DNA of 18,556 nt, taken from the NCBI GenBank assembly GCA_004431415.1, contig QPMI01000635.1:1-18556 (forward strand). Direction: 5' to 3'. A program made the position numbers and the translations under genes. Below, piece after piece: positions 1-18,556 of the stretch; positions within the stretch are counted from its first letter, which is position 1, and every line of letters starts with the position of its first letter. Under the pieces are notes generated by a model that saw nothing but the letters and a program-made list of their open reading frames with translations, ran no database searches and was not told the DNA's origin. The stretch comes from Cyanophora paradoxa CCMP329 (Eukaryota; Plantae; Glaucophyta).

Positions 1-2271
1 TCCGAAAAAGCGATTCGCACTGCTGTACGATGTTTTCATCTCAAGCCAAATGGGTTGCCCAAGTGCGTCCCAAATGGCCTGAAGATATACCATAAAATTG
101 ATACGAATAAAAGGAGACGAGCATTGTGAATGAAGACTCGTGGATTCTTTTCGTCGCGCCTTCCGAGGAAAGAGAAACCTGAGCGTGGTTGGGCGTTTTG
201 CAATGGAAACTGAATGGAAATCTGAACTGAATGGTGAATGCAAATCCGAACCATGCGTGATGGCCACGCAATCAACGCCCACAGGAAGCGCAGTGTCGTA
301 GCTGTTTTCTCGGAGCTTCGCGAAGAGTGCAAGAAGAGCTTCACGCTGCCGACACGGATTTCATCAAAAAAAATGAATCCGGTCATAAGGACATGAAGAA
401 AGCGAACAGCCATCGCGGATGACTGGTGTCTGCGGCTCTGATATTCAACGGTCCCAATCAGAAGCGCACTGAAGCCCCAGCGTTGCCTTGAAGTCTACAG
501 GGACTTGTGGACGGCCGCCGAAGATCGTGTTCGAGACGTCTGATTGTTTTTTGTCATGCGCACGTATGTTGGTCATGTTTTGATCATGTGCGTGTGTAAT
601 TCGAAAAACGCACCAAAGACTCTCATGATATCGTCGACAAGAGTCTGTACTTGAAGAGGCCAAAGCTCCTCTGGATCGTTCGCAGGCTGCCTGAGAACCG
701 ATGCTGTTTGTGAGAGCGTAAGTTCTTCAACGTGCGATTGCAAACAGCAATCGAGTTCACCCCACGCATTGGCGTTACTGCGACCGCCCGAAAGGCGGTG
801 CGCAGCGAGACCGCGTATGAGTTCTCCTTCTCCGACCCCTCGCGGTCGGATCCATCGTTTTTGTTCTCATCGTTCTTCTGAAGGATTGCTGTCGTCGATC
901 TGCCGACTGTATTCACGCTCTGATTCTTCAGAATCTGCGCTTCCCATCAGTTTGCGATAGCAATACACAACAGCAGGACCACATTTCGAGCAAGGGAAGC
1001 AGCGTTCGCCAAAAGCGTCATCGGCTTCCACAAAATCAGAGGCGTAACCGGTGAAGAAGAAATTGCAGACACAAAGAAAGACAGCACCTTCAGAGGACCT
1101 CCTTTATCAGCAGTCTGAGGGCAAAGCACCGACCAGATTTTCAGGACCGGGCAGCATCGATATTCGAATGGTGAAACAACGGGAAATCACCTTCAACGAA
1201 GGAACTGCCGCTGGAATATTTTCGCCAGAGACGGTTGCTGCCTGAAAGCAACAGCAACGGCAAAGGTTTCAGCACTCGGGCATCAGCATTCGAACGCTCG
1301 AATTGCTGAAGAACACCGTTTTGAAGCGGCCGCCAGAGGAGTTTCCGGCCTGAACATGTGAGGAGAGCTCTTAGCATCGGCTGTCAAGTCCATAAAGCGC
1401 TGGGATGCATGCACACCGCTGGAACTGGAACGGGTTCTCCGCCTTTGCTTCGGTTTCCACAGTTCGGGACCTTTCCAATAGCTGCACATGTAGTGTAAGC
1501 TGTTATACTAGCGGGGACGAGTAAGACTGCGTACATTCAACGCAAGTATTTCTGGCCAGAGTGCATCTCCTCGCCGCTTCTTGATTTTCTGCCAGAAGAG
1601 CATCAAAATTTGAAGGATCAATATCAACATCGTCTGCCAGCAAGTCACAGGAGCTGTACAGGGAATCAACCTTTCGCAACACAGCTTCGTATTTGCAAAA
1701 TGAATGCGCACGTGATTGAGGCCAAGCGTAGATCGATGTCGCGAACCTCCTGAGCAGCAGCATGAAGCTCTCTTACGCTCTTCATCGCGTCTCCGAGAAC
1801 AGGCGGAATGACAATTTTGCTCGATATCGGTAACACTTCGTTGGCTTCTTCGACTGCAGCTAGAAAAGCTCGTTCGACGTTAAAAAACCTGATTGGAACC
1901 ACGCCCGTTGGTCTAATTGCGACGATTGCATAGAAGGGAACCTAACGTGGGCGCACGTTGTCGTATCATAGTTCATGTGCACGGCCGGAGGTTCTGCACG
2001 TCCACAATCTCTGTGGAGCTAATGAAACGATTGCAACAGCGGCATATCCACAGCGTACGCGTACACATAGACCTTGTGGAGCTCATTGAACAACGCAGTC
2101 CTCCACTTGAAGACATTTGCTTTTCGTGCTACGATTACTGCGCAGGCTTGGTACCGCGGAAAAGCGCACCATAGTACAAGCATGCGCACCATTTGCACCG
2201 CTAGCTTCCGCTGGGGTCGCCGGTAACGCATGCACGCCACTAGTGCTCACTGGCGGCCGCGGGCTGGCCAT
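1..2271 (-). CDS. Multi-exon hypothetical protein, 3'-truncated by the window edge
   Basis: ATG at 2271 (MASPRPPVSTSG...). Regularly spaced GT..AG introns on the minus strand join protein-like exons: VIVARKANVFKWRTALFNELHKVYV, FFNVERAFLAAVEEANEVLP..., SCDLLADDVDIDPSNFDALLAENQE, PANDPEELWPLQVQTLVDDIMRVF. No family recognised, and several frameshifts are needed. Confidence 0.6.
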
Positions 2272-2451
2272 TGGGGCAGTCAACTCTGCGAACAGCGCTA
2301 AGTGACATTCTGTTGCTGTCTCATTGCTGCCTAGGAGCGCATCTCATCGCCTAGGTGCGCATCTCATCGCGTCGCTGTACCGGGCTTCGGAAAACTCCGA
2401 TCGCACTACAGCAAGACTAAGCACACTCAGAAGAGCTCAAGATGCTTACGG
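2272..2451. promoter_or_regulatory. Putative bidirectional promoter containing a 20-bp tandem repeat
   Basis: A 180-bp gap between divergent ATGs (2271 minus, 2452 plus). CTAGGAGCGCATCTCATCGC (2331-2350) is followed by CTAGGTGCGCATCTCATCGC (2351-2370), 19/20 identical. Confidence 0.5.
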
Positions 2452-5400
2452 ATGGTCGAGATGCTCCACGCCGATGTTTTCAAACTGCGCCGTGTACCCC
2501 CCGGGGGGGGAAGAACCTGGAGCAGCGGTGCGAACCACGCCATGCAGCGGTCAGAGCGACTGCGGTGCGAATGTCAGAAGTGTCAAGGCAAGTTAGTGCG
2601 TCCTGAGGTTTTCAATGCACATCAACTGCTAGCGCACACCGGATTCAGTAGCAGCGATCGGCAAGTCGAGTGCCCTTGCTCGCGCTGCAATGGAAAGCGC
2701 GTCTCGTCTTGGGTGCAAAGGATACATTTGCACCTAGACAAATATGGATCCAGTCTAGTAGAGCAAGCTGCCCGGAGAGCTCCTGTAAGCGATTTCGTTC
2801 CTTTCGTAGCCGAAGTTCTTGACGTACCGATCCCGACAATTTCGGTTCGAGCGGCACTAAGAAGACGACGATTAGCAGCCCCGGCAGCACTTCAAGGCAA
2901 CGAGCGACAAACAGATTCCAATTCGAAGCGCAAACGTGTCAACAATAAAGCCGCTCGTATGCTGCGAAGGCTGGGTAGATATACTGATCGTATTGGTCCT
3001 CAAGAAAACGGCAATGAACCTGGACATGAATCCAATATCGTCGATGGCATCGATGGCGATGATCATGCTCATGAGGCTTTCGACGACCCAGCCGCAGAGG
3101 AAGGCCAAGCGGACGACATACGTGCAGACCCAGCTAGGGCGGATCAAGTGGATTATGGCCTAGAGTCGGATCAGGACGCAGCGCTCGACGGCTCAGATGA
3201 TGAATGCACTACCAACAGGCAGAATTTTTATTCTGAGCCTCTTTTTGAGGGCTGTAAAGTGTCGGTGCGTGCTGGAGCATTCAATACATTGCTTGATATT
3301 GGCTGTATTGGCTTTTTAACTGTTCTCTAGCGCATGGATTACATCACTTTTTGCCTCGCATTGAAGAAACGCTTTACACAAGCACCTGTTGAGATGTTTG
3401 CATCAATCAACGCGGCTGTGTCTCTCATCATTGAGGGCCAACAAACTGCAACGAGGCAGCTCGGGTCTTGGAAGAGAATGATTAGAGAAATCCAAGAATT
3501 CGTAGCGGTAAATAATCAACCACTTTCAATTTTCGTGTTCGAAACGTTAACATTTCCCTGCTCAGCCTTCCATCACTTTCAGGACATGTGGGTATAAAGA
3601 GACAAAGCACAAGGTGGCGATTTGCAAGACAGTCTGGATCGAAGACGGAACTGTTCCTCCAAATACAGTCTGCGAGTGTGGCCATTCAACCTATGCCGAT
3701 GGTGTGGTGGGCTTCTTTTTTGATCCGACCCGGAGTTTTCAGCAGCTACTGAACAGTCCTTCGTATTATCCCGGTTCCAGTGCGCTTGATTTCGATTCTG
3801 TCGGTGCGGCCACGGCTGATTCAAATTTACACAACGGCGTCCAGTTACGGCGTTCGAGCAATACAGATTGGGGGCGATCGTGTTCCAGATTACTATTTGC
3901 GGTCGCAAGAATCCGAAACCCAACATCTCACTGGCGACTTTGTTCAATCAAGACTTTTCTCTTCTCTTCACGAGGAGGGCTGTGTGCGAATTTCGGACGG
4001 TCTTGGAGTTGTGTGCGCATACTCTACAGATTCCGCAGTGACGCACAGCTGGTCATTTCCACACCTACAGCTTATTCTGAAAACTGGACTCTAATGTCGT
4101 GTTTCTAGGTCCCACGGCGGCTCTTTCACCCCTGTGTTTGTGATACCTATGTCTGCGCATCCTAATTGGCGGTGCGTGATCATTATCTCGCTTTCCGCTT
4201 TTTCGCCACTTGTCTCACCCCGTTTCGCTCAGAACAGCAATGCAACGCCTTGTTTTTCTCATGGATGGGAAGCCGAGAAACTTCGATGGAATGTTCCGCG
4301 TATTCCTTACACCGTGGCTTGTTGCCAACCAGCCGCCGCCCCAGGAGTCCCCGCTCCCGAAAGCCAAGGGTTTGCATGCCTTATAATCTGTCTCTTTCTT
4401 TCAATCATTCAATACCGTTGAGCAGAGTGGGGTTTTGCAATCCTCTCACCGGCAAAACTGACAAAGCATATTTCACAATGGCTCTCAATATCGATGACCT
4501 CCCCGGATGCGCAACGGCATTTATGATAAGTTCGCGTAACGCATCCTTGCGCGGCTTTGTATTCCGGGACAGAAACCTAAACTTTCTGCCAGCGTCGCAC
4601 AGTGGCGAGCACGGCCATCCGCTTCGGAAGGTGGATTTCTGGAAGCGCAGAGCAAAACCGCCGGGAAAAACATGTTTCAAGCACACGATCTCCCGCTCAA
4701 ACACTGGATGCGGGAGTTGTGCGTACTGACCAAGGATCATGATAGACCCCCATCTGCCCGAACGGACTACTGCATGGTGCTCGAGCCGACGGACTGAAAC
4801 GTTCCCACTGCAGCTGTTCTGACACCCTTCGGTACAGCGAGCCGACGGACATGCTGTAGAGATCCAACGCCAAAGATGGTTTCGGAAAGAGATTACGCAA
4901 CAGCTTTTGTTCAATTTGTGAAAACGAAAACCTTCGGTAAAACCTTTTAGAATGGATATAATGAACATCCTTCGAACGCGCCGTCCATTGAATTGTCTCT
5001 GACCAGGCGTTCAAGCTTGCCGACTTTAGCGGAATGGCCACACTTTCGGCTCGGCCCCCTATGCGACTTCAGCTGGAGAGCGACTGGGAGTTCCTGCGGC
5101 ATGGCGAGCTGAATTTCGACATGGGTGTTGAACCGTTCAGGGGCGGCATACTGACGAATTCCACCTCGTCAAAAACCGTCTGGCGGATGTCTTCAACTAT
5201 CTTCGCGGCAACGCGAATAATGGTGATAAGCTCAGTCCTACCTCGATTCAGTGTGTCGTTGCATCTTCCAACTTCCATTCGTGGTTGATTTGCAACGTAC
5301 AACACTAACTTAATTACTTTTCGTCAATGCGAAGGTTAAGCATCAACATGGATGTTCTTGTCCTTTACAGGGCGCCAAGCGAAGCGAAATACGCTGCGCA

Positions 5401-7538
5401 GAGCAAAAGATGGAAAAGGATCGGCGACTTTTCGAAGCAGCTCTCCGAAATGGCAAGCCTCCTCCACGCCAGCCAGTCGACCTTGTCGCGGAACTCGAAG
5501 ATAACGCGCCGTTTGCCTGGGAAGCCACTGAACGGCTGTACGATGCTATCGAGCGTGTTGCAAGGCGCGCACGATATCCGCACTTTTCAGGGAACAACGG
5601 TAAGAATTAAATTCGCCAGACCCAATTTAAGTGAAGTTCGCAATTACAATCGAGAAGAGCGAACTTTGATGTTTATAATTAGACTAGCAGAGTAACATGT
5701 GTGCAGATGGACGAACCGTCGTTTTTACGGACTGGACGAAACTTTCAAAAGTTCGCTATTGCAGACGTGGCAGGCGACATTCTTCGCATGTGTCTTGATG
5801 CGGATATGGATAAACAGAATTGCCTCTATCGATCCTCGTAATCAATCAACTGACGTCCTGCACGGCATTGGATCGAAGGTAACGTTGAGAAAGCAAAGGC
5901 TCCGACACGTCCGTGACGTTGTAACAGATTGTTTATCCGGACTTCTTGCTTGAACTCCGCAAACTAGCAGTTCTTACAAGGGGTGCCGAACGTCACTACG
6001 TACCCGTGCCGTTCTGGACAATGTATGCAGCTCTCGTTGTTGATGCGTGCGCGAACCATTGGCTGTAGCTTGCCTGCAATCGGCTTAAATGTGCGAAGAG
6101 TGGACGGATGCATCGAGCTGGGGCCGGCGCCAGCAGTTTCTTCCCGTGGAACGGAGCGGGGCGGTCACAATGTGAAAGTTACTGCAGGATCGGGGCACAA
6201 TATCTCTGATAACGAGTGCGGCCCGACGAACGCAGGCAAGTTGTGAAAATATCTATTGCAATGCATATTGAATTTCGGTATTGGAGACGTTTGAACGGAT
6301 TTTGTTTGCAGAAATGGGAGCCCTTGCCGTCCTGCAGCATGCAACAAGCGAGTTCTTGAACAAATTCCACACCTTTTGACACGGAAAAGCGGTGCCATTC
6401 GGAAGGCAAACGTGGCTACAGCTACGATATTCACACAGCTGGCGTCGAATACAGTAAGAAAACCAACCAGAGCTGGGGTTCATTCTTGAAGGAAGGTTCG
6501 AAATTCGAATTCGCAATTGCCGCGCCAGCTGCAGATCTAGGTCTAGATCTGCCACATTGATGACAAACTCGCATTAATTCTGCACAGTGATGACAATCAC
6601 GATGAAGAGTACGGTGGCTTAATCTCTTCGTTTGCGAGCGGAGGAGCTGTTCGGAAATCCCCCGTATCTGGCCGTTTTCTTCGACCTCTACGTTGACGAG
6701 CGAGAGCGATTCATAGAGACTAAAGGCACCTGGTTCGAACCATCCGGATATCGATCCGCCCCTTGTTTGTTTCTTCGTGATCATGATCAGCATGCGCACC
6801 AGGCCGAGCTGGGAATACACGATAGAACCTGTATTGCCGGAGGCTGGGCCTGGCGTCGATGGATCCGCACTTCTCCAGCATGCCTCGAGAATGGATTGGC
6901 GTCCCACTCGAAAGGGAACTATGTATCCTTGCTTTTACGCCAACCACCACCTGTTCATTCCAGCGAACTCTCAACCGACAAGCACGACAGCTCATTATGT
7001 CCTTTATCGCGATGGTTCCCCGACGGCAGCTCTGCGACGAGGGGGGCCATCCTACCCTATCATTCCCCTCGGGCGAATGGGTTACCTCAGCGCCGAGGAG
7101 ATCCAAGCGCATCCTGACCGGCGAGAGCCGGTCCGGCGCATGCTCGTGCCAGAGGCCTTTCGAGTTCGCCCACGCAAAGGCACCGGGGGTGCGTTTCGCA
7201 TCATTCGAGCTGCGGTCTACCCCTTCTCAGCTTGCTCGTTTATGCCCAACTTGAACTGCGACCGAATCGACATCACCAAAGAGGACCCTCTCTGTCGTTG
7301 GTGTGGCTGACACCATCGAGCCTTGGCGCCTGATGCCTCTCCCGACCACACATCGTCGCAATTCGAGCGTGTGCTCCCTAACCCAACAATCGATCACCTT
7401 ATCAGAGCTCAGCAGTGCTTCCCAGATAAGGGAGAGGTTAGGAACTTTCTTGGCGAGCGGCTGCCGTTCACGTCCCTGCGTAAACGTAGCCTACAGCTGC
7501 ATGCGCAAGACGTATTTATGCAAATAATTAGCTTGTAA
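2452..7538 (+). CDS. CACTA/EnSpm superfamily DDE transposase (Tnp2/TnpD-like), multi-exon
   Basis: Spliced motifs are colinear with CACTA TnpD. CPCSRCNG..HL..YG matches the transposase-associated Zn motif. PLFEGCKVS|RMDYITFCLALK spans intron 3265-3330. VCECGHSTY..FFDPTRSFQQLL follows intron 3508-3565. YSTDSA..SFTPVFVIPMSAHPNWR holds D1 at ~4029 (intron 4052-4108) and resembles LSTDG..SxWPV..NLPPxxR. YFTMALNIDDLPG holds D2 at ~4495 and resembles LLWTINDFPA. AHDLPLKHWMR resembles HRRFLPxxHPxR. RHTDEFHLVKN resembles RHxLDVMHIEKN. Also APFAW..RYPH and FKSSLLQTW. ELGPAPAVSSRGTERGGHNVK holds the catalytic E at ~6153 and resembles GP..FERxxGxLK. Several homopolymer indel corrections are needed. Structure beyond ~6500 and the stop codon are uncertain. 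Confidence 0.88.
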
Positions 7539-7566
7539 CAAATTTATTATTTCTTGTGGCTGCGGC

Positions 7567-7818
7567 ATGCAGCCGCAGAGCCTCGGAGGCCCGGGCCTTT
7601 CGGATCCGGTCCTGGTGATAAAGCACACAATCATGATTCTTCTGATCATGAGCCCTTCGAGCTCGTGATCATGAAGCCTCAGGCTCGGTACCAGGGCGAC
7701 TCGGCGAGCTCGACGCATGGCCAGTCATGATCAAAAAGCTCGTGTCTCGTAGCAAGCAACCCTCCGGGCCCAGCCTAGAAGACACACGGCGCTGATGATG
7801 GGAGCTCGAGCCTCGAGA
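7567..7818 (+). repeat. ~250-bp direct repeat, copy 1 (rich in palindromic hexamers)
   Basis: ATGCAGCCGCAGAGCCTCGG...GGGAGCTCGAGCCTCGAGA aligns end to end with 7992-8240, with one substitution and a few 1-bp indels. Confidence 0.95.
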
Positions 7819-7991
7819 AAGCCTCAGGCCTCTTTGAGGCCCAGGGGACATGCGCTGGTCATAGACTCTAGATCTGAGAGCCTCGGAGCTCGAGCTTGTG
7901 ATCATGTGCATCGGATCATGACGCCGCTGAGCCTCATGGGCTCAGGCCTCGGCAGCTCCCTTTGAGGCTCCGGATCCCTGATCATGACTTA

Positions 7992-8240
7992 ATGCAGCCG
8001 CAGAGCCTCGGAGGCCCGGGCCTTTCGGATCCGGTCCTGGTGATAAAGCACACAATCATGATTCTTCTGATCATGAGCCCATCGAGCTCGTGATCATGAA
8101 GCCTCAGGCCTCGGTACCAGGGCGACTCGGCGAGCTCGCGCATGGCAGTCATGATCAAAAGCTCGTGTCTCGTAGCAAGCAACCCTCCGGGCCAGCCTAG
8201 AAGACACACGGCGCTGATGATGGGAGCTCGAGCCTCGAGA
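7992..8240 (+). repeat. ~250-bp direct repeat, copy 2
   Basis: Near-identical to 7567-7818. The 7819-7991 spacer is built from the same short words (GAGCTC, GATCATGA, GAGCCTC). Confidence 0.95.
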
Positions 8241-8338
8241 TCCGCATGATGGGCCGGAGCCACTAGGACGATTAATATTTAATTATGCCTCTGTCCCCTC
8301 ATGATCAGCGAGGACGGCTTATGCACATGATGATCATG

Positions 8339-8365
8339 ACGTGCGTGCATGCGCGTGCACGTGTG
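8339..8365. other. 27-nt perfect purine-pyrimidine alternation (potential Z-DNA)
   Basis: ACGTGCGTGCATGCGCGTGCACGTGTG is strictly RY-alternating. Confidence 0.6.
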
Positions 8366-8438
8366 AATGCCTGCAGGCGCAGTTGCTTCCTCATCAATTC
8401 AAATCTATTACTTCCTAATTCCTCAAAAAGCTACTCTC

Positions 8439-11400
8439 CTAATTCCTAATAAAGCTACATTCTCCCCTACACATAGATGCGATTCGGCTTTTGCAATTGG
8501 GTCGGCGGCACTCGGGGCATTTGCATATTTGCTCTTGGCTGCTGTCGTCGAGGGGTTCCGACTGGAGGCCCGGAGGTCGTGAATTCGAAGAATGTGGGAA
8601 TGTGACTACGTCAAGCACGTACCGAATACTTCCACGTGAGGGGATCACCTGGCTCAATGTCTAACAAAGCATAAACCCAAACGATATCTGTCACCAACCA
8701 TCACTGGTCGAAGCTCGACGTTCGGTTTGCAGCTGTGATTCTGCAGCACTGGCCAGCCCCGGCTGCCATATCCAGCAACCTGCACGCGCAGGCCTGTTCA
8801 AGCAAGTAGGAAGGGTACTTGTAATTGGAAGAAAGAACGGAATAACCAGTGAGAAGATGTTTCAGTCGAACATGCGTTGTGAGCCGCGTAGCTTTCGACC
8901 GGGAACTTGCTCTGGACCTGTTGCATTGTTCCCCAGAAGCTCTCCCAAAACATGCCTGCTCGTATTCTGGGGGCCCACTTCGGGTTCCGGATGCCAACAC
9001 CACAGTCATTCTGCTCGTCGAAAACTTCCACGGAAATACTTGAAGACTGACCCACGATCTTGAAGTTCCGATTTCCGCAATCGGTAGTGCATAAGAGCAG
9101 TTGAAAGGAGTGCACTGGTATTCGGAAACAATGTTGTGGCAAGCAGGAGAATCGCGGCAAAGAAGCAGACGTGACCCCGTGGCCCGAAGCAGACGCAGCA
9201 ATCATGGCTCAGTTGTTCTCTCACTGCCGCGCGGAACAGCGCGGTCAAAAATCGAACAGCGCTAGAACAACGCTCACGAACCGGCTTTTGGAATATGTGG
9301 AAACTGGAAGTTAGAATTGTAAGCTTGATAACCTCATTCATCCGCTTTTTTGCCAGCTCCGATCCATCATGTGAAATTCGGGCTGTTTGGAGGGCGAGTA
9401 TGATAAAGTTTCTGAAACGTGTTCCAGGATGTGCGGAGAGGACTCAATTCTGGAGTTCTGAGCTCGGACTTCCGAGATGTACCTGCAAACGAGCACATGA
9501 AAAGGAAGAATACGAAGCTGAACCCTCCCGAACCTGAGTTCAAGTTCTTTGATGTGCTCTTCAGGGGAAGCCGTGATATCGTGATTGATGAAACGCGCCA
9601 TAAGGTGCAGAGTAAGTTTCTCCTTGAATTCTTCGAGAGAAATCGGATACGTGTACGAAGCCTGCTTCTCGTATTCTTCCTCATGCAGCTGCCCTGTTGG
9701 GTACCACATCTGCAACGTCGGAGGCCTACGGCGCCAGACGCGTCGAGAATGTCGTTCAGACATTCAGACAACTGGAGTAAGAAGTCGCCTGCATGGACTC
9801 GCACTGCGTTAAGCCTTCAGTACCGGTAAATTTCAGCAATGCGAGCAATTGAAATGCCGACCGACAATGTGAACGCGTCCTGAGCAGTTGACGTGGAGCA
9901 GGGAAATAAATCGATTCGACAGACACGGTCCTCAAGTCGTGTTTTCCGGCAACCAGCGGTCACATCTCGCATGCTCGAAAGCATTCACCAGCGATGACAG
10001 CCGAGTTTTGAAAGTAGGTCCAAGAGAATCGTAAAAAACCATTCCGGCCCATCCGAGAACTCAAAAGCACGTGAGCAGTCCTTTGCGATGAAAAAAATAA
10101 GCGAAACGATATTGTTATACGTTAAAAGAAATAGATTACCAGTGGAATGCCTCTTCCAATACGAAGGCGACCCCGGGCGCTGGTTTGCGGTGCCGTTCCA
10201 GAGATGCAATCTTGGAGACATGCTCTCAACGACATTTCCATGGAATTCTAGGGGTCGGATTCAAGTTGACGCATCAACTGTTCGCACCAACAATCTCCAA
10301 ACTGTTTATAATTATGCTCGAAATTAGGCAATGGAAGACTTTGAGATGATCATTACGCACAATTCTGCATGTGGATGTCATTGAAAGGGTCACCCAGCGT
10401 GTGCTCTGGAAGAAAAGCGAAGCCTCCCGTGAATTCCGCAACTCCGGCACGTCAGCAAGCGGACGCTCAAGTCGTTCTGGTTCGAGGCGAAACACGTGAA
10501 ATGCGTCCACGTTGTACGTTGAGTACAATCCTTGAGGGACAGTTCGTGCCGAAGCCTTGCCTGCCTTGAAACTGAATCTGAATTCCCGTCGATCACTTGT
10601 TGGCGCAGCTGAGAATTCCCAGGTAATGAAACGACCAAGAAGTCTGCAGTGATGCACATCGCGTTCCGACCATGGATGATGGGAAAGTATCTTTTGGAAA
10701 AACAGGATGTCAAAACAGCTTTGCTTAGAGTAAAAAAGACAGCAACTTGGACCCACCAGGAAGCCCGAGGCGCACTGAACCGCAAGACGGACGAAGATTG
10801 ATTCGCGAATATCGTGTTCCATCACTTGATCACTAATAACAGCGTGCGTAATTCTGCATTCATCACATTAAACAGAGAAGTAGGTGGAATCCATATGTAA
10901 GAAAAAAGGGAGCTCACCCCAGACTTCCGAAGTCGGCAAGCCCGGCTTCGCCGATAACCAGCTCTGTGCGTTGTGTATACGCCTCGAGCAACGCAATCAC
11001 TTCTGGGAATTCGCTGAACATAACGGATCGGCACTGCTGAAGAAAGGATATCTGAAGTTTTTTGAAGCTTGCGAGAAACATCTGCAAGATTTCGAATCCG
11101 ACGAGTTTCTTCAGACGAAATGGAAGCTGCCTCTCCATGAGAGCAAATATGAGGCTGAGCTGCCTCAGAACGCCACCTGAACCTGCTCCTATGTCCGCAA
11201 TCACAACCTCTGGCGAGTCCAGCTCCAAAGTCGAGTTCCCTTCCGGCAAGACCCCCCGGAAATGAACTCTGCTATCGTTTTGATGTCAACGAGGCCGAGC
11301 TCGCCATAATTCAAAGATCGAGAGAGCGATCCAATGGATGAGGCTTTCATGTTGTCTTGTTTCTTCAGAATGCTGGGCAGACTCTCCTTCCGGATATGAA

Positions 11401-14097
11401 AACGCATATCGTACACCGCTCCAGCTTCATCCGCATAGCGACCATTTGTGACAACCTCAGCCGCGAGTTGCCAGCGCCGTGGAAAGTTGTCACATCGACT
11501 GAATTCAATCATGCCACGGGAGCAAGAAACGACAAGCGGGGCGACTTCGTTTTCTCGCTTCTTGCGCTTCACTGGCTTGTCGCCTTCGAATCACTCAGAA
11601 TTAAAAAAACCAGAAACATTTAAGACGCTCGAACCGACATACGGAGCTGAAGCTAAAGATTGGAGGACTCTCGCTGCAGCCTGACGCCTGCCACCGCTGC
11701 TGGCCGTGGTGCGCGATGCACTAGCAACAGATGCGTCTGAGGAATTGGGATCGTCGTTCGCGCCGTATGGCTTCTGGCTGAAGTCTATTGCTGAGTCGTT
11801 TCCGGCTGAACGCGTTCTTTTAATTCCCTGGCCAGGCTCTGGTCCGAAATCAACGCCTGACACGCGGGGTATCAGTTCAGAGATGGAAACATGAGCCATG
11901 ATTCATGCATATGCTCACCGGGTATATTCTGAGTAAGGTAAGCCCAAATTTGATGCGTGTTCGGAAGTCGACCAGACGGTGTGCGAGCGGAAGGGTCCTT
12001 CGAATTCTTGATAGCGTACCGGTACCACGACACCCTCCAGTTGCTCAACTGTGGATGCGTTTTAGGCCGATCCGTACTGGGCTGCTGCGGTAGGTCGCTG
12101 CGCATGCTCTTCCGGCGCCGTTTGACGGTGACGGGCCGATGTGCAGCTAAAGGGCGTGGGAACTCATGATCATGATCACGATTCTCATGGCAGGTTGGCG
12201 AATTCCGTGCCGGAGAGCTGTTGGAAGAACTGCTTCCGCCTGGAAGCTGCAGCTGCTCTTCCGCCTGGAATAAGCGCTCGCTTTCGGACTCATCGCTCGC
12301 TGACTGTTCACCGTACGAAAAATCGGTCTTGGTACGATCAAGAGACCGCAAGTGAAGTTTACGAAGTTCCTCGGAATCGCCAGGGAGTCTGATCTTCAGA
12401 GCTAGAAGCCAGTCGCTGGCGACCGTCTCGGCATACTTCAATAGGGCACGCGAGCTCGATGTCGAAAGCTTCTTTACCCAATCCAGAAGTTCGGCGGGGT
12501 TTGCCGGATGGCCGACATTCACAGAAGGAAAATTCGCGTTTTCCAGCATATCGAGAACGACATTGGCGGCTTCAGCAGTGATGTCTGATATGACCTGCAA
12601 AGATGATGGGAATGACAACAGGTGTGCAGAGAAGGTTGAAGATTACCTTCCTGTGGAGGGCGTCGTCTGTTTTCACACCGAAGGATGCGAAGAAATCTGT
12701 TGGCAGCTGAGGAGCATCGTCGTCGCCGTCACTCGATGAGCTCGAGCTCGAGGAAGCGTACGGTGCTGCATTCGATTAAAAGCGCGGATGAAGCCCGAGC
12801 ACACGGGCAGATGCAGCTTTTCTTTCGCACATGAGAGCGGTGGAGAGAATGCCCTGTTTCCTCGAGCTGCTGCCCGAACCAAGACTGGCGGCGTCCTCGA
12901 GAACGCGGTGCGACGGAGGGCTGCGAGGATAAGAAGAAGCCCGCACAGTCAAGTTTTAGAATGGCCGCTCACTCTCAGATGGTCAGATTTCACGTGAAGG
13001 ACTTGGGGTCCCAATGCTGCGCGAAGCTCAGATCTAGATTGCTGGAGGACGCTCAAATCGCTGGTTTCTAAGAACGGACGGAGCTCGTGGCACCAACTGG
13101 GCCCGGAGGCAGAAAGGTGTGCGCGCGATCCTGGAGCCGGAGGCGGGGGGAGCCGGATAGCGGGGGGAGCCGGATATAAGAAGCAATAAGAGTAAGAAGT
13201 AAGAGTAAGAAGCTGTAAGCTAAGAAGCTGCGTAGAGAAGAAGCTCATTGAAGGGAAGAAGCTTTTGAAGTAAAAGCTCTAGACACAGCAATTGCAAGCA
13301 GGCAGCCAACCACGTGCACGGACCGAGCTCGTTACGGCACTGCGATGGAAGCTCAGATTTCAAAGCGAGGCTATGGCGTGAGGTTGCCTTGAGTAAGAAA
13401 GGCTTCCCGCTCTGGTTTCTGGTCCTGTACATGTGGCCACGCGTGTGTGAAGGGCGTGCATAGCGTATCCACATGTACATGCACGTACGCGGCCGGTACG
13501 CCGCGCCTGACTGGATTCTTGCAGCCTCCCATTGTTTGAGGACTTCTCGAAACCGCTCGGAGCACCTGGATCATCGGAGCCGGCCCGAGCAGTGCGCTTG
13601 GCGCTTCTTGTAGGTTTCGAGCGGAGCGTCCGGTGGGGCATTCATGTTCCTTTTGGGAAGCCGCAAGACCAGAGCGATCGGCTTCAGAGCTCGCACATGC
13701 GCTTCTGCGAACAAACCTCCTCATTCGAACTCTGGAAGGCGCCCAAGCGCGTTGGAGAGGTCAGAGATGTGGCATGCGCACACGCCGCAATCGCGCTACG
13801 CATGCTAGTTGCGATAGAAGCACGCCGGGAGAGCTGGCCGGCGCGAGAGGCACGGCCGGCGCCGAGAGAGCTGCGGGTGGTTGTGTAGGCAAGCTCTGTT
13901 CTTGTGTACGGACCTGTTTTGCTCTTAGCATTTGTTCTACCGTCTTGACGACGTCGACCGGCAGACGAACTCTGTACCCCCCTTGCGCGCCGTGCCTCGG
14001 CCGTGCCACCGTAGCGCGCAGCGGCTGCCTTTGGCGGCGCGATGAACAGCTTCAGAGAGCCTTTCTTTGACTCTGACTGCTGAGTCGTCACTGGCAT
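8439..14097 (-). CDS. Multidomain chromatin modifier: low-complexity N-terminus + DOT1-like methyltransferase + Ulp1/C48-like peptidase + AWS-SET-postSET methyltransferase
   Basis: ATG at 14097 (accATG; MPVTTQQSESKK...) and stop TAG at 8439-8441. A continuous chain of exons and short introns runs between them (e.g. 13131-13323, 10081-10139, 8562-8622), with no intergenic-sized gap between domains. The DOT1 C-terminus and the peptidase N-terminus lie in the same exon. The N-terminal exons and the single-gene status depend on indel correction. Confidence 0.72.
8480..9205 (-). other. AWS-like Cys cluster + SET + post-SET domain (architecture like the Set2/NSD/ASH1 family)
   Basis: DCCVC..CRDSPACHNIVSEYQCTPFNCSY..DCGNRNFK resembles AWS CxC..CxN..EC..C..CxNxxF. 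EVFDEQNDCGVGIR..IRAGMF supplies the GxG motif. LQNHSCKPNVE has NHSC at 8740-8729. GDRYRLG(fs)YALLDIEPGDPLTWKY resembles RI.FFA.RDI..GEELTYDY. CKCPECRRPNCKSRI is post-SET-like (8524-8480). Confidence 0.9.
9580..10400 (-). other. Ulp1/SENP-like (peptidase C48) domain
   Basis: Motifs occur in order. PFNDIHMQN|FWRLL resembles WLNDxIINFYMxLL (~10385). VAFVLEEAFHW|TAHVL has His at 10144-10142, with Trp split by intron 10081-10139. FYDSLG lies at 10033-10019. PAPRQ precedes C(G)VHAGDF (Cys 9803-9801, needs a +1 correction). LEEFKEKLTLHLM gives a terminal helix. Several frameshifts are needed. Confidence 0.62.
10490..11320 (-). other. DOT1-like class I SAM-dependent methyltransferase domain
   Basis: SLNYGEL (YGE at 11308-11300) precedes a frameshift at the C6 run 11252-11257. 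VIADIGAGSGGVLRQLS is motif I and resembles FVDLGSGVGQVVLQVA. LVGFEI is post-I. Then TELVIGE, G|ITHAVISDQVM, CASGFL|ILSHHPW (resembles GxRIVSSKPF) and STYNVDAFHVFRL (final strand). Confidence 0.82.
13143..13290. repeat. Intronic tandem/low-complexity repeats
   Basis: GCGGGGGGAGCCGGATA x2 (13143-13176, perfect 17-mer) followed by degenerate TAAGAAG/GAAGCT units, inside the predicted 193-nt minus-strand intron 13131-13323. Confidence 0.8.
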
Positions 14098-14154
14098 GGT
14101 ACTTCTTTAGCTTTCCCGGGAACCGCGATACCGCGAACTGCAAAGAGTGCGGGG

Positions 14155-17105
14155 ATGATTGCTGACGTTTTCGCGTGCCGCAGAGCCCCTGCCCCCAGAT
14201 ATGCGGCGACTGGATACGACGGTATGTAAACGCCACAGAAACGACGTGCCAAACAGTTCTAGACTGCCATACGCAGAACCCACATGCTGCCCTTCTTGAA
14301 TTACAGGCATCGAAGTCGACTATGGCAGCCTTGTCGGCAGCGTCAGCCGCCATCAATGCTACGCTTAGGAACAGGCGCAGCAGAGCTCGAGCAAGTGCAG
14401 TTTGGCGTTCTTACTCGTTTTACTCGCAGAGCAATCATCGCAACGGACCCCGTGAACTTCGCTGACCCAAACAAGCAAGTGTGCCTTCTTCTGATAGGCC
14501 TAGTTCAGCTTCACGGTCGTCCTCTAGCCTTGCGTGCTTTCCGGTGCGAATGCGCGGCGTTGCCTTCATCGCTGCCTGCCGGCTCTGTGTCTGAAGCTGT
14601 CGATCTTTCTGATCTGGCAGGGCGTGTGCCGACCTGCCAGACGGAGAAGTCGAGAGCTCGAATCTGATTTACGTGTACTGCATATGATTGCAATTCGCAC
14701 ATGCACGTCCCAGATGGCGCTGGCATCATTCAGTGGTGATCAAATCGAAAGAGCGCACGTATTCAACTGGTCTCTTCTTTTCAGTCAGATCTTCGCGTTC
14801 TTCGCCAAGGCCGGATGCTCTGGATTCACAATGGAGTCGGTTCATCGAAGCACGAGATAGCGATTGTGCTGGGGCTTGGGGATCTTCGTCATTGTCAGTG
14901 CTCTCGCAAGTTGAAGATGTTCTCCGTCCGAAATGTAAGTAGTAGTGTTTGCTTGGAGTGGAATGATTGATTCTTTTTCAGTTTATCTTCGTGCTCTTTC
15001 GGATCCTATGGGATAGGGTCGTCTTCTATGGTGCATGATAACTGGCCATCTTCAGAATTGCAAGAATCTCGCGATGTACCTTTCTCTATCGGTCTGTCAC
15101 ATTACAATGTAGTTCAATCTGTAGCATACAATCAGTTTGGCGCACAGTGGACATCAATTCTCACCGGAAGACATCGATGATAAACTGAGTCAGCTCTGCG
15201 ACGGTTTCAAGTTTGTGACGCTCTCGCATGCGGGAGCGCGTCTGATCTGGAGTCAGTCGTCAATGAGATAGCGTGCCTGGTACGCAGTCAATTCTCTTGT
15301 GCAATGTTGGATCCGTTTCTTCTGATTTCGTCACAGCTTGCACGCACTGCAAAGCTAAAATGCCCTTTGGGGCGTATGTGTGGACTAAAGGCTGCTGGGG
15401 AACGTCAAGGGGCGCTCTCGGGGCCGAATGTTCGAAATCGAAGCGGTCGCCAGCACCAGCAAATGCCATCAATGGACGGTAGACTGTGTTAACCTTTATT
15501 TTGTCCGTCGACTTCAACTCTTGACCGATCAGGAAACCCACCTTGTTATCCCGTGTGTGTACGATTAAACTTCCTCGCCGACCAGCAAATGCCCGGAAAC
15601 AATCAAGCACACTTCGCCATTCTCAAATCGGAAGGTATTCATTAACATGTGCGCCTGATTCCGCTGAAGTGGTCCCGACCTTCGACTTAGATAATAGAAG
15701 AACGCCGAACGAGCGCGAAATCCATCACTGTACAGGAGCTTGAGAGCTCGCATCCCTTGCAAAGCTTCCTATCAAGGTCAGTTGGAATCACGGTCCGAGC
15801 AGCATTCTGGTTCTGTTTGGAACCGAATCTTTTAGTTATCATCATGGAGGCAGTTCAAAGGATTCTTTTGACGGAATCCGGTTCATTTCGAAGGAATTTC
15901 TTATCGAGTTATCGAAGCTTAGCAAGGAATTCGGAATCGCACTGTTGGTCGACGAATCAATAACAGGTGAGCAGCTGTACATGTGTGCGCGCATAACAGG
16001 GAGAGTGACAATGTCCGCACTTCACGCGCAGCCATGTGTCGTACAGCGAAGTCTTTCTTCGCATTTGAACAGTTTGTGAGCACTGTGCAGAACTCGAATA
16101 CGAGACGAATTCTTGTGCACGGCGCTGCTACGGGAAAGACGATGCTTCCGTCGTGTATTCTCGTGCGGCGCTCAGCATTGTTCGCTCTCGCGAGGCATTG
16201 AGAGCATCAGGCGTGATGCAGGTAAAAGAAATGCCTGGTGGAGTAGATCCATGGAAGCGGACGTTCAAGCATTCCAGCGGAAGAATTTGCAAATGATGTT
16301 TTTGCCGGTACGATTTCACACTTGTAGTTTTCTGAGAAACACTTTATTGCTCTCTGCAGAGTATATAACTGTGCAGCCGTATCGTGACGCTTTGATCAGG
16401 ACATCTTGTGTTTTGGATAAAGTTCGTGTTTGTGTCCTAATCGTTACCACTCTCATGCATATCCTCTAGTTTGCAAAATGCGCACTCGATGTCCAGACTT
16501 CTTCCAAAGCCTTGCAGCTCTGTCGACCAAAATTTCCATCTCTTTGAGGACTTCGAATTTGGCCTGCGAGCTTCGCTTTGGAGGCGACGGAAATCTTCTA
16601 TCCGTCCGGCCGCTTGGCTAGCAGCTCGGAAGTCTCCCGCTACTCGGATTGCGATCTATCCTACAGTACATCCGTAAATGACATCAAATACGAGGCGGGG
16701 CAAGCAGTTTCGCATGCCGGTACGATTATAGTGTATTGCTTTCATAATTTTCTGCGAAAGCGCATTTGTTTGCTTTCATTAATTTTTGCGCCTGTGCAGA
16801 TTCCTGTTCGCAGTGCCGACTGTTGTCGCAGACAATTTGCCCCAGTTCATTACACGCGCATTGCCCAATGCGAAGTAGCATCTTATCATCGTACATTTTT
16901 CCAATCGATTGCAATTCCAGAGCTGGTGCAGCGATTTGCACGTGCCAAGCGTACAAAACTATCGCTTTAGATGGTAAAGTCTATTTTTTAAGAAGAACGA
17001 GCGCGCTTGGGCTTGACCGCACTTGGGCTTGCAACAGGGTCCTCGAATGCCCTACGGCGAAACCAGCGCGCGCTGTCAATGCATCGTCTGTCAAGAGTAA
17101 GCTAA
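14155..17105 (+). CDS. Multi-exon protein: unknown N-terminus + class III PLP aminotransferase-like domain + C-terminal PHD-like zinc finger
   Basis: Plus-strand introns throughout. Motifs occur in order: MITGHLQN; FVTLSHAGA(fs)SDLESVVNEIA (resembles SGSEAxExA); KGCWGTSRGALGA (15387-15425, resembles FHGRTxGALS); VIIMEAVQ (resembles VIVEPVQ); FLIELSKLSKEFGIALLVDESIT|AMCRTAKSFFAFEQF (intron 15967-16031, resembles FLxxLRxLCxxxGxLLIxDEVxTGFGRTGxxFAFE); ATGKTM (Lys at 16136); ITVQPYRDALIRTSCVLDK; TRIAIYPT. Start (14155 or 14201) and stop are tentative. Confidence 0.75.
16800..16950 (+). other. PHD-like Cys/His zinc finger
   Basis: With two indel corrections the exon reads DSCSQCRLL..HCPQCEVASYHRTFFPIDC..AICTC, i.e. 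CxxC..CxxC..YH..C..CxC. Spacing deviates from a canonical PHD. Confidence 0.4.
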
Positions 17106-17172
17106 TCTTCGAACCGTACGCGTGGAGTGTGTCGTGATTCCGAACATACACAGCCAACAAGATCCGATCTCA

Positions 17173-18213
17173 TCAATGACTCCAGGCCCCAGCGAGCGGC
17201 TCTCTCGCAAGGCTTAGCGATGCTGCTCTCGAAATCGTCCAAGTAATGCGAAAATCGTACATGGCCTGCGAATGGGTGTGTGGGATGTTAGTTAAAAGAT
17301 GGGGATCGAACAAAGATCGGGCAACATTACCCGAACAAGCATATTGTGATTGTTCATATACGCCTCGGCGGCGGGCATCCATTGTGTATCCTCGATTATT
17401 TGCATAGTTTTCTCCCACTGAAGATAGCGAAGCACTGTGAGTATAATGGCGCGCGCGGGTGCCCATGGCCAGCAAAATTGCGCACATCGTGCACAATGCC
17501 TGCCACGTTGAGGCAGCTTCCTAGAGAGCCCTCCCTTGTCTTCCGCATCAGGTAATCCATGGCATCGACACGGGCGCCACCTCGGGAACGAGGAGTAATA
17601 CGGCGCTAGTGTGTGTGCAGCTTGCTTCAGAAGTACCTCGGCCATTAGACGGTTTCGGTACAAATGCTGAACGAGATTCTGAGTAAATTAACAGGCCAGG
17701 CTCTGATATTGATCATCTTTGTCTTACCTTCAACATGCATTGGTCCTGCTTCGGAAGGCGGTTGCAAGAGCGAGCTTCAGTGTACGGATGACGTACATAT
17801 TCCTGAATCGTGTGCACAGAAGGCACAGGATCAAGCATCCAACTCTTGAGAATTCCGGTGTCATGATGAGGAAATAGTGTTCTGAAAGTGTCACCGAGGC
17901 GTTTGTGGTGACGATTGAATATGTGTCGATACGGATGCCCTGGGGCAACAATTGGCTCGAGGCGCATGTTTCCACGGAAACCGCCAACTTGGTAAGGAAC
18001 CCAGCCATCACGCGCATGCGACGCGTACGAGCCTTTCCAGTCTTTGCGTCGAGGAAGCAGTCAAGACTATTTTTGAGTTGTGTGCACGGACGCCGACAGC
18101 AGGAGCTGGGACGGGCAAGGTCGCCGGATAGTCTTGTGAAAAGAACGAAACTTGATGCCGGGCGTGTTCTTCCAAGTTGCCTTCCACTGGGAGCCAGAAA
18201 TTAAGTTTACCAT
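17173..18213 (-). CDS. Multi-exon hypothetical protein
   Basis: Minus-strand donors (GTACGT, GTAAGA, GTAATG) join exons PIVAPGHPYRHIFNRHHKRLGDTFRTLFPHHDTGILKSW.., LYRNRLMAEVLLKQAAH.., VLRYLQWEKTMQIIEDTQWMPAAEAYMNNHNMLVR and AMYDFRITW..WSH*. The start is either 17967 or the ATG at 18213. No family recognised. Confidence 0.55.
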
Positions 18214-18402
18214 ATGGTAAACTTAGGGTGTGGTAAAGTTGTGCTGTTTTGCGTTACACCACTGTAAAGTCACCAGGGTAAAGTCGCCGGGGTAAAGTCA
18301 GGGTGGTAAAGTTGTGAAAAGCGGGGTAAAGACGTCGGTGTAAACTCGCCGAGGTAAAGTTGGCGAGGTAAAGACGTCGGGGTAAACTCGCCGAGGTAAT
18401 GT
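18202..18402. repeat. Subterminal-type repeat array, core (G/T)GTAAA(G/C)T, led by a 24-bp perfect palindrome
   Basis: Palindrome TAAGTTTACCATATGGTAAACTTA (18202-18225). Direct copies at 18216, 18232, 18263, 18277, 18291, 18305, 18325, 18339, 18353, 18367, 18381 and 18395, mostly with a 14-bp period. A 42-bp higher-order duplication pairs 18325-18366 with 18367-18408. Confidence 0.92.
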
Positions 18403-18556
18403 TGGTTTCGGTGCAGCGGTTCACTTTTTTACGTTTTTTTTGCTTTTTTTATTTTTTCTGTAAAAGCTATCTATAGCAGCCCATCTTCAAGCGATACTGC
18501 GCGCGAGCTCTATCCTAGAGCTAGCTAATCGGTTTTGATGAATGCTTCGTATTCCT

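Follow-up and report, generated by a model that had tools for sequence, protein, structure and literature searches.

The end of the DNA analysed here, an 18,556-nt stretch of the Cyanophora paradoxa CCMP329 genome (contig QPMI01000635.1, positions 1 to 18,556 of the forward strand; hereafter the window), contains a plus-strand gene related to class III aminotransferases, which are pyridoxal 5′-phosphate (PLP) enzymes. The gene occupies the final 3.5 kb of a transposon-like element and had been described in an earlier note, at 14980-16975, as a domain with colinear class III motifs followed by a PHD-like finger. Two exons of it could be recognised. Exon 1 (about 15873-15966, in the frame of 15744) encodes the peptide GIRFISKEFLIELSKLSKEFGIALLVDESIT, including the putative PLP N1-binding Asp (15951-15953) and a Glu immediately after it; on its 5′ side no stop interrupts the frame back to 15744, and an acceptor may lie at 15803. 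Exon 2 (16032-16198) encodes (A)MCRTAKSFFAFEQFVSTVQNSNTRRILVHGAATGKTMLPSCILVRRSALFALARH and ends at a TGA stop at 16199. The two are separated by a phase-1 GT-AG intron of 65 nt (15967-16031; cag/GTGAGC ... CGCAG/CC). As predicted from these sequences, they encode a strand-helix-strand unit with the PLP-binding Asp, followed by an 'xxRTxK-FAFE' loop and a strand.

All frames were translated and the stop-free pieces searched singly, exon by exon. The open piece containing exon 1 (15744-16076, plus strand) gave the top class III aminotransferase match, or the only one, in every library searched. Its match to Pfam Aminotran_3 (PF00202) covered profile positions 204-235 with an E-value of 0.13; at 11.3 bits, the best score obtained, it falls short of the curated threshold of 30.5 bits, and this distance from the family (11 bits vs 30.5) sets the exons apart from known class III enzymes. 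NCBIfam returned five matches (E 0.04-0.17), which share one profile position and are exclusively to class III models, namely bioA, hemL, two acetylornithine transaminases and diaminobutyrate (DABA) transaminase; with scores of 10-13 bits against cut-offs above 370, exon 1 also differs from known enzymes in having no affinity for any class III subfamily. The PDB search ranked glutamate-1-semialdehyde (GSA) aminomutase (2epj) at the top, and the best three clusters in the ESM Atlas were all Aminotran_3 (0.85-0.87). Against a local class III hidden Markov model (HMM) of 421 columns, built from seven Escherichia coli paralogues, exon 1 came out first (E 0.005) among 667 segments from the six frames of the entire window. 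In hhalign, run against the alignment of the seven paralogues, exon 1 reached 85% probability (P 7e-6) and ranked first of 554 segments. The exon with DESIT is the sole class III profile match among these 554-667 segments. Its aligned peptide, GIRFISKEFLIELSKLSKEFGIALLVDESITG, corresponds to ArgD 200-231, placing Asp 15951 on the PLP N1-binding Asp226. As in the family, this Asp lies at the end of a hydrophobic strand and is followed by Glu (LLVDE on ArgD D226-E227), which upholds the previous assignment of the PLP-binding Asp to the codon at 15951-15953 of VDESIT.

The donor at 15966 (cag/GTGAGC) matches the consensus and is the top-scoring donor of the region. Removal of the intron gives the required change of frame and restores the canonical spacing D-E-x-x-T-x-x-x-R-T-x-K, the spliced product reading DESIT-A-MCRTAKSFFAFEQF where the family motif is DEVQTG-x-G-RTG-K-LFA-x-E-H-x. 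The continuation into exon 2 was examined without joining the two sequences, by placing its peptide on the next eight profile columns after the exon 1 alignment. On these columns MCRTAKSF scored 12.6 bits, the first of the 28,166 six-frame 8-mers of the window (P 3.6e-5). An in-phase open frame is kept by 15 of the 18 downstream AG sites, and the other 14 of them all gave 0.1 bits or less. The following block, FFAFEQF, fell on LFAxxHY (P 2.8e-4). hhalign placed exon 2 on columns 246-286, directly after columns 213-244 of exon 1, without reaching significance alone, and neither the PDB search nor the ESM Atlas recognised exon 2 by itself. Combined, the results from both exons make class III homology, as judged by profile comparison, secure over about 80 residues (columns 210-281 of the 421 in the local HMM), and indicate that the 15966/16032 intron is real. 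What is shared with class III aminotransferases (PF00202: BioA, HemL/GSA aminomutase, ArgD/AstC, GabT/PuuE and DABA transaminase) is the hydrophobic strand ending in Asp-Glu, the T-x-x-x-R-T-x-K motif, the F-A-x-E block and the next strand, at the spacing of the family (ArgD 200 to about 270).

A Lys had been proposed at the Schiff-base position (GKTM). Its codon is present at 16136-16138, within TGKTM; the canonical position, in contrast, was not supported. When ILVHGAATGKTMLPSCILVRRS was slid along the profile, a single register was clearly the best (5.9 bits, P 5.7e-4), with Ala (16124-16126) in the Schiff-base column and Lys 16136 four residues later, on the GGG loop, whereas the register with Lys on Lys scored -9.9 bits; the family expects the Schiff-base Lys about 29 residues past the Asp. 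The register chosen by hhalign was the same; both placements used the same seven E. coli sequences and concern a loop region where indels are possible. Among the columns invariant in the seven paralogues, D226, E227 and R234 are kept, G231, P248, D249, G259 and G260 are lost, and K255 is probably lost. The glycine-rich loops TGxGRTG and K-x-x-GGG appear here as T-A-M-C-R-T-A-K and G-K-T-M-L-P, so that the gene also differs from known class III enzymes in the Ala that replaces Gly in TGxGRTG, in the missing GGG loop after the Lys and, most likely, in the Ala of the Schiff-base column. In a protein so changed, Gly231 and Gly236 (E. coli ArgD numbering) would have become Ala and the O3′-contacting Gln/His would have become Ile, together with the loss of the GGG loop. 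The caveat attached to the original description, that the glycine motifs are eroded and the protein possibly inactive, is thus borne out by the loss of these loops and catalytic residues.

Beyond the two exons, the region 14700-17300 gave zero class III matches in Pfam, NCBIfam, HMMER and hhalign. We therefore do not find a full domain, or the colinear motifs described for 14980-16975, a result that also holds when weak matches are added up. A colinear chaining score of the profile against the DNA, allowing frame changes and introns, was 84 for the whole region, far above all controls (50 ± 4), an excess that is due to exons 1 and 2. Once these were left out, and with 400 dinucleotide shuffles as reference, p was 0.115 for the upstream part on the N-terminal columns, 0.30 for the downstream part on the C-terminal ones and 0.125 for their sum; controls made from natural sequences agreed with the shuffle-based result. 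The upstream 'exons' proposed before (14980-15872, plus strand) have no significant class III signal: their best candidate for the NSG(S/T)EA motif, QSILLCNVGSVS at 15285-15320, is at chance level after counting all trials, and so are, over all placements, the look-alikes NVGSVS (15300), FGAYVW (15370), VSHAG (16710), GNLLSVRP (16590) and RQFAP (16840). An alignment by eye of VSHAG...RQFAP to VRGMG...RFAP of ArgD was rejected, being unsupported by hhalign and BLASTP and at chance level over all trials. Neither upstream nor downstream is there a significant colinear match to the SG(S/T)EA, aromatic-HG or HG(S/T)T-GNP motifs, and these, like the motifs of the C-terminal domain of class III enzymes, are undetectable in this gene. 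A complete class III domain, diverged past recognition, may extend over 14980-16975. Elsewhere in the window, the peptide FAKSVIGFHKIRGVTGEEEIADTKKDSTFRGPPLS (924-1115, plus strand) aligns to the Lys-to-GNP region of class III enzymes (columns 263-301, E 0.15) with Lys on Lys; this is probably a chance match, and the surrounding 2.3 kb show no colinear excess (p about 0.3).

The frame of exon 2 is closed by the stop at 16199, about where the HG(S/T)T motif would come. None of the GT sites ahead of this stop is more than a poor donor, and a strong one further on, at 16222, belongs to another frame. The stop could be due to a splice site of low strength, to an indel in the assembly or to breakage of this copy. 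On the 5′ side, frame-preserving GT-AG pairs (15479-15532, 15635-15802) would take out the three in-frame stops that lie between 15267 and 15966, although such pairs are so easily found that this proves little. A codon-usage test of the frame, trained on the other exons of the element, had too little power. In the 3′ part, the 12-mer GCCGGTACGATT occurs twice (16304-16315 and 16716-16727), each time with a donor-like G/GTACGA and, 50-80 nt further on, a pyrimidine-rich ...TGCAG acceptor (16359 and 16799); these donor and acceptor pairs may delimit two small introns. The first of the proposed 'exons' (ATG at 15028) is flanked by an inverted repeat of 25 nt, 80% complementary, at 14978-15002 and 15164-15188.

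The Cys/His cluster at 16787-16945 (plus strand, frame of 16748) has the pattern C-x-C-x3-C-x2-C-x7-C-x4-H-x2-C-x15-C-x8-C-x-C. With the PHD finger (PF00628) it has in common a Cys/His-rich stretch with C-x2-C and C-x4-H-x2-C; it differs in that the third Cys is absent, the last pair is C-x-C vs C-x2-C, and no Trp precedes that pair. Two further readings of this DNA are free of stops, one in another plus-strand frame (16548-16967, closed at 16968) and one on the minus strand. The cluster and its alternative readings matched no family of Pfam or NCBIfam at E-values up to 1-5 on either strand; PF00628, whose fingers have a C4HC3 spacing, gave no match at E ≤ 1, and there is no PHD, PWWP or other domain on either strand of 16100-18250. 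With seven Cys in 50 residues the cluster comes only third among 239 six-frame segments, and counts of 7-8 also occur in frames that are clearly non-coding. Homologue searches with the Cys-rich frame and with the alternative 3′ frame found none, and the AlphaFold predicted local distance difference test (pLDDT) score of the Cys cluster was 48, that of the single open segment 16548-16967 being 36. With no family match, a deviating ligand pattern, an unexceptional Cys density and a pLDDT of 48, the idea of a PHD-like finger, or of a fusion to one, is not sustained; the cluster most likely arose by chance in a single frame or belongs to some unrelated tail. A T-rich motif of 21 nt (TTGCTTTCAT-AATTTT-GCG) is duplicated just 5′ of the Cys-rich stretch, at 16736-16756 and 16770-16790, 34 nt apart.

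A HMMER search of 1.8e9 representative proteins with the exon 1 segment identified no true relative at E ≤ 0.001, its single match, to a repeat protein, being spurious (SWAHGPSGLIV vs SWNHGPSSILV). Scans of metagenome and viral contigs returned nothing, there is no second copy within the window, an exact look-up of ten open reading frames of the window found none of them in the protein collection, and the open segment at 15263-15622 on the minus strand has no homologous proteins. The best motif of exon 1 is about 30% identical to the family consensus. Since a recent capture of a host gene would give strong matches, the lack of any indicates that the divergence is old. These results agree with the earlier suggestion of something other than a standard housekeeping orthologue: subfamily affinity is lacking, no relative turned up among the 1.8e9 proteins, and the gene lies inside a transposon-like element, a further difference from class III enzymes.

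The DNA of the window is eukaryotic and rich in introns, with a G+C content of about 50%. TA is depleted (0.55 of expectation) and CpG, at 1.09 of expectation, is not, and therefore there is no mark of the deamination decay of a methylated element. DNA methylation in C. paradoxa marks young transposons (PMC12344493). Towards the start of the window, a transposase-associated domain (PF13963; 2647-2748, plus strand, E 6.4e-5, below the gathering score) lies inside the open frame 2335-3327 and supports, by its sequence, the assignment to a CACTA/En-Spm-like element. At the other end, an array of 14-nt (42-nt) repeats of the GGTAAAGT type (18259-18404) has the form expected of transposon subterminal repeats, which makes the class III-like gene the last one before the end of the element. 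A transposase-related domain and subterminal repeats are thus found in one element, as for cargo of a CACTA/En-Spm-like transposon. Between them, on the minus strand, is the SET-domain exon (NHSCKPN; 8657-8797, E 0.018) of a divergent writer-like gene. Its orientation is consistent with the head-to-head arrangement with a histone methyltransferase-type gene that had been pointed out, and several kb separate the two genes.

We consider the most plausible reading, to which we give a fair though not overwhelming degree of belief, to be an old cargo gene of a CACTA-like transposon, derived from a class III (fold-type I) aminotransferase, very diverged, with its catalysis probably lost, and possibly broken in this copy. 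Such a gene would have a long evolutionary history within the element, in the course of which it moved away from catalysis; the Schiff-base column most likely holds Ala, with a Lys one turn later, and the product, if made, would not be a transaminase but a pseudoenzyme with the PLP fold or a scaffold that binds a ligand. The copy in the window may be broken, given the stop at 16199 without a usable donor before it. Non-transposase coding sequence between the transposase region and the subterminal repeats is also known from accessory genes of CACTA/En-Spm and Mutator-like elements (e.g., Ulp1-like protease genes) and from Pack-CACTA fragments (PMC6379663), from which the present case differs in that the cargo comes from a PLP enzyme and is too diverged for recent capture. 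A text search of the literature identified no paper tying Aminotran_3 to transposons.

Several observations weigh against this reading. Only 17-20% of the class III domain is recognisable, so that a captured fragment is possible, and 15966/16032 is the only fixed exon border of the gene model. The apparent break at 16199 could be accounted for by an assembly indel. The placement of the Lys comes from an ungapped alignment of a loop on a seven-paralogue profile, and a gapped alignment can match Lys to Lys. Lastly, a pattern scan for CACTA terminal inverted repeats with a 3-bp target duplication was at chance level, with the left end of the element outside the window.

Two alternatives appear improbable to a similar extent. 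According to the first, the gene is intact and encodes a divergent class III fold of full length that carries a Cys/His zinc finger at its C-terminal end; the protein might act on an unusual amine and would cooperate with the SET/DOT1-like writer. The presence of the Asp and of a nearby Lys would suit such an enzyme, as would the GT-AG pairs that can be drawn to remove the three stops between 15267 and 15966, the colinear order of the weak look-alikes NVGS (15300) and VSHAG (16710), a donor at 16720 whose phase suits the Cys-rich frame, and the divergent orientation of the SET-like gene. It is, however, hard to reconcile with a chain test that is not significant past exons 1 and 2, with the failure to find PHD or any other family in any frame of both strands of 16100-18250, with two 3′ readings that lack homologues and have pLDDT values of 36 and 48, with a Cys density matched by non-coding frames, and with the Ala in the Lys column of the best alignment and the stop of exon 2 without a donor.

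The other would be a transduplicate of the Pack-CACTA type, in which the element took up two exons of a host class III gene along with the intron between them, a piece now decaying and with no function of its own. Pack-CACTA capture of host gene fragments is documented in plants (PMC6379663), the element is of a type known to do so, and both the restriction of the recognisable sequence to a fragment of the domain and the premature stop after exon 2 would be expected from it. Against it, a very old divergence is implied by the lack of a match in 1.8e9 proteins and by a most conserved motif that is about 30% identical to the consensus. Moreover, open frames of 111 and 76 codons persist in the two exons, and their intron retains consensus splice sites and the correct phase, which is better explained by an old cargo gene than by the decay of a recent capture.

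We regard as very speculative a more ambitious scenario in which the giant CACTA-like elements of this alga would carry a conserved class III-fold protein (a pseudoenzyme, or else an enzyme whose Lys is displaced) that would bind an amine or a ligand related to S-adenosylmethionine (SAM) and would work with the SET/DOT1/Ulp1-like writer of the element on the chromatin of the element. The specific chemistry suggested by the earlier note, on histone lysine, SAM, polyamines or a DNA base, is unsupported, having come only from the gene neighbourhood (the SET-like gene). Chance mimicry of the DE-x-x-TG-x-x-RTG-K motif by unrelated sequence is very unlikely, because, even if each database match is weak by itself (E 0.04-0.56) and exon 2 alone is unrecognised, the top matches in three libraries all belong to one family and fall on the same profile position, exon 1 ranks first window-wide, and exon 2 continues at the predicted column (P 3.6e-5).

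If it holds in other copies, long retention of a PLP-enzyme fold as cargo beside histone-writer-like genes would add a new kind to the accessory genes of transposons, and this class III-derived gene would also be a candidate pseudoenzyme; a class III-fold protein acting on chromatin would, in turn, be a PLP-fold module recruited to chromatin control. The evidence in the window covers the core of about 80 residues only, with signs of catalytic loss and perhaps of breakage, and its value is partly corrective, as it removes the PHD finger and the complete domain from the description of the locus and leaves the histone chemistry without support.

Other features of the element include a direct repeat of about 250 nt with 97.6% identity (7567-7818 and 7992-8240, 425 nt apart). 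Rfam gave zero matches. Tandem 17-mers (two copies of GCGGGGGGAGCCGGATA) and overlapping palindromes of TGTACATG occur at 13133-13230 and 13426-13490, in G+C-rich DNA that separates the SET-like gene from the divergent class III-like one, and may be shared promoter elements of both genes.

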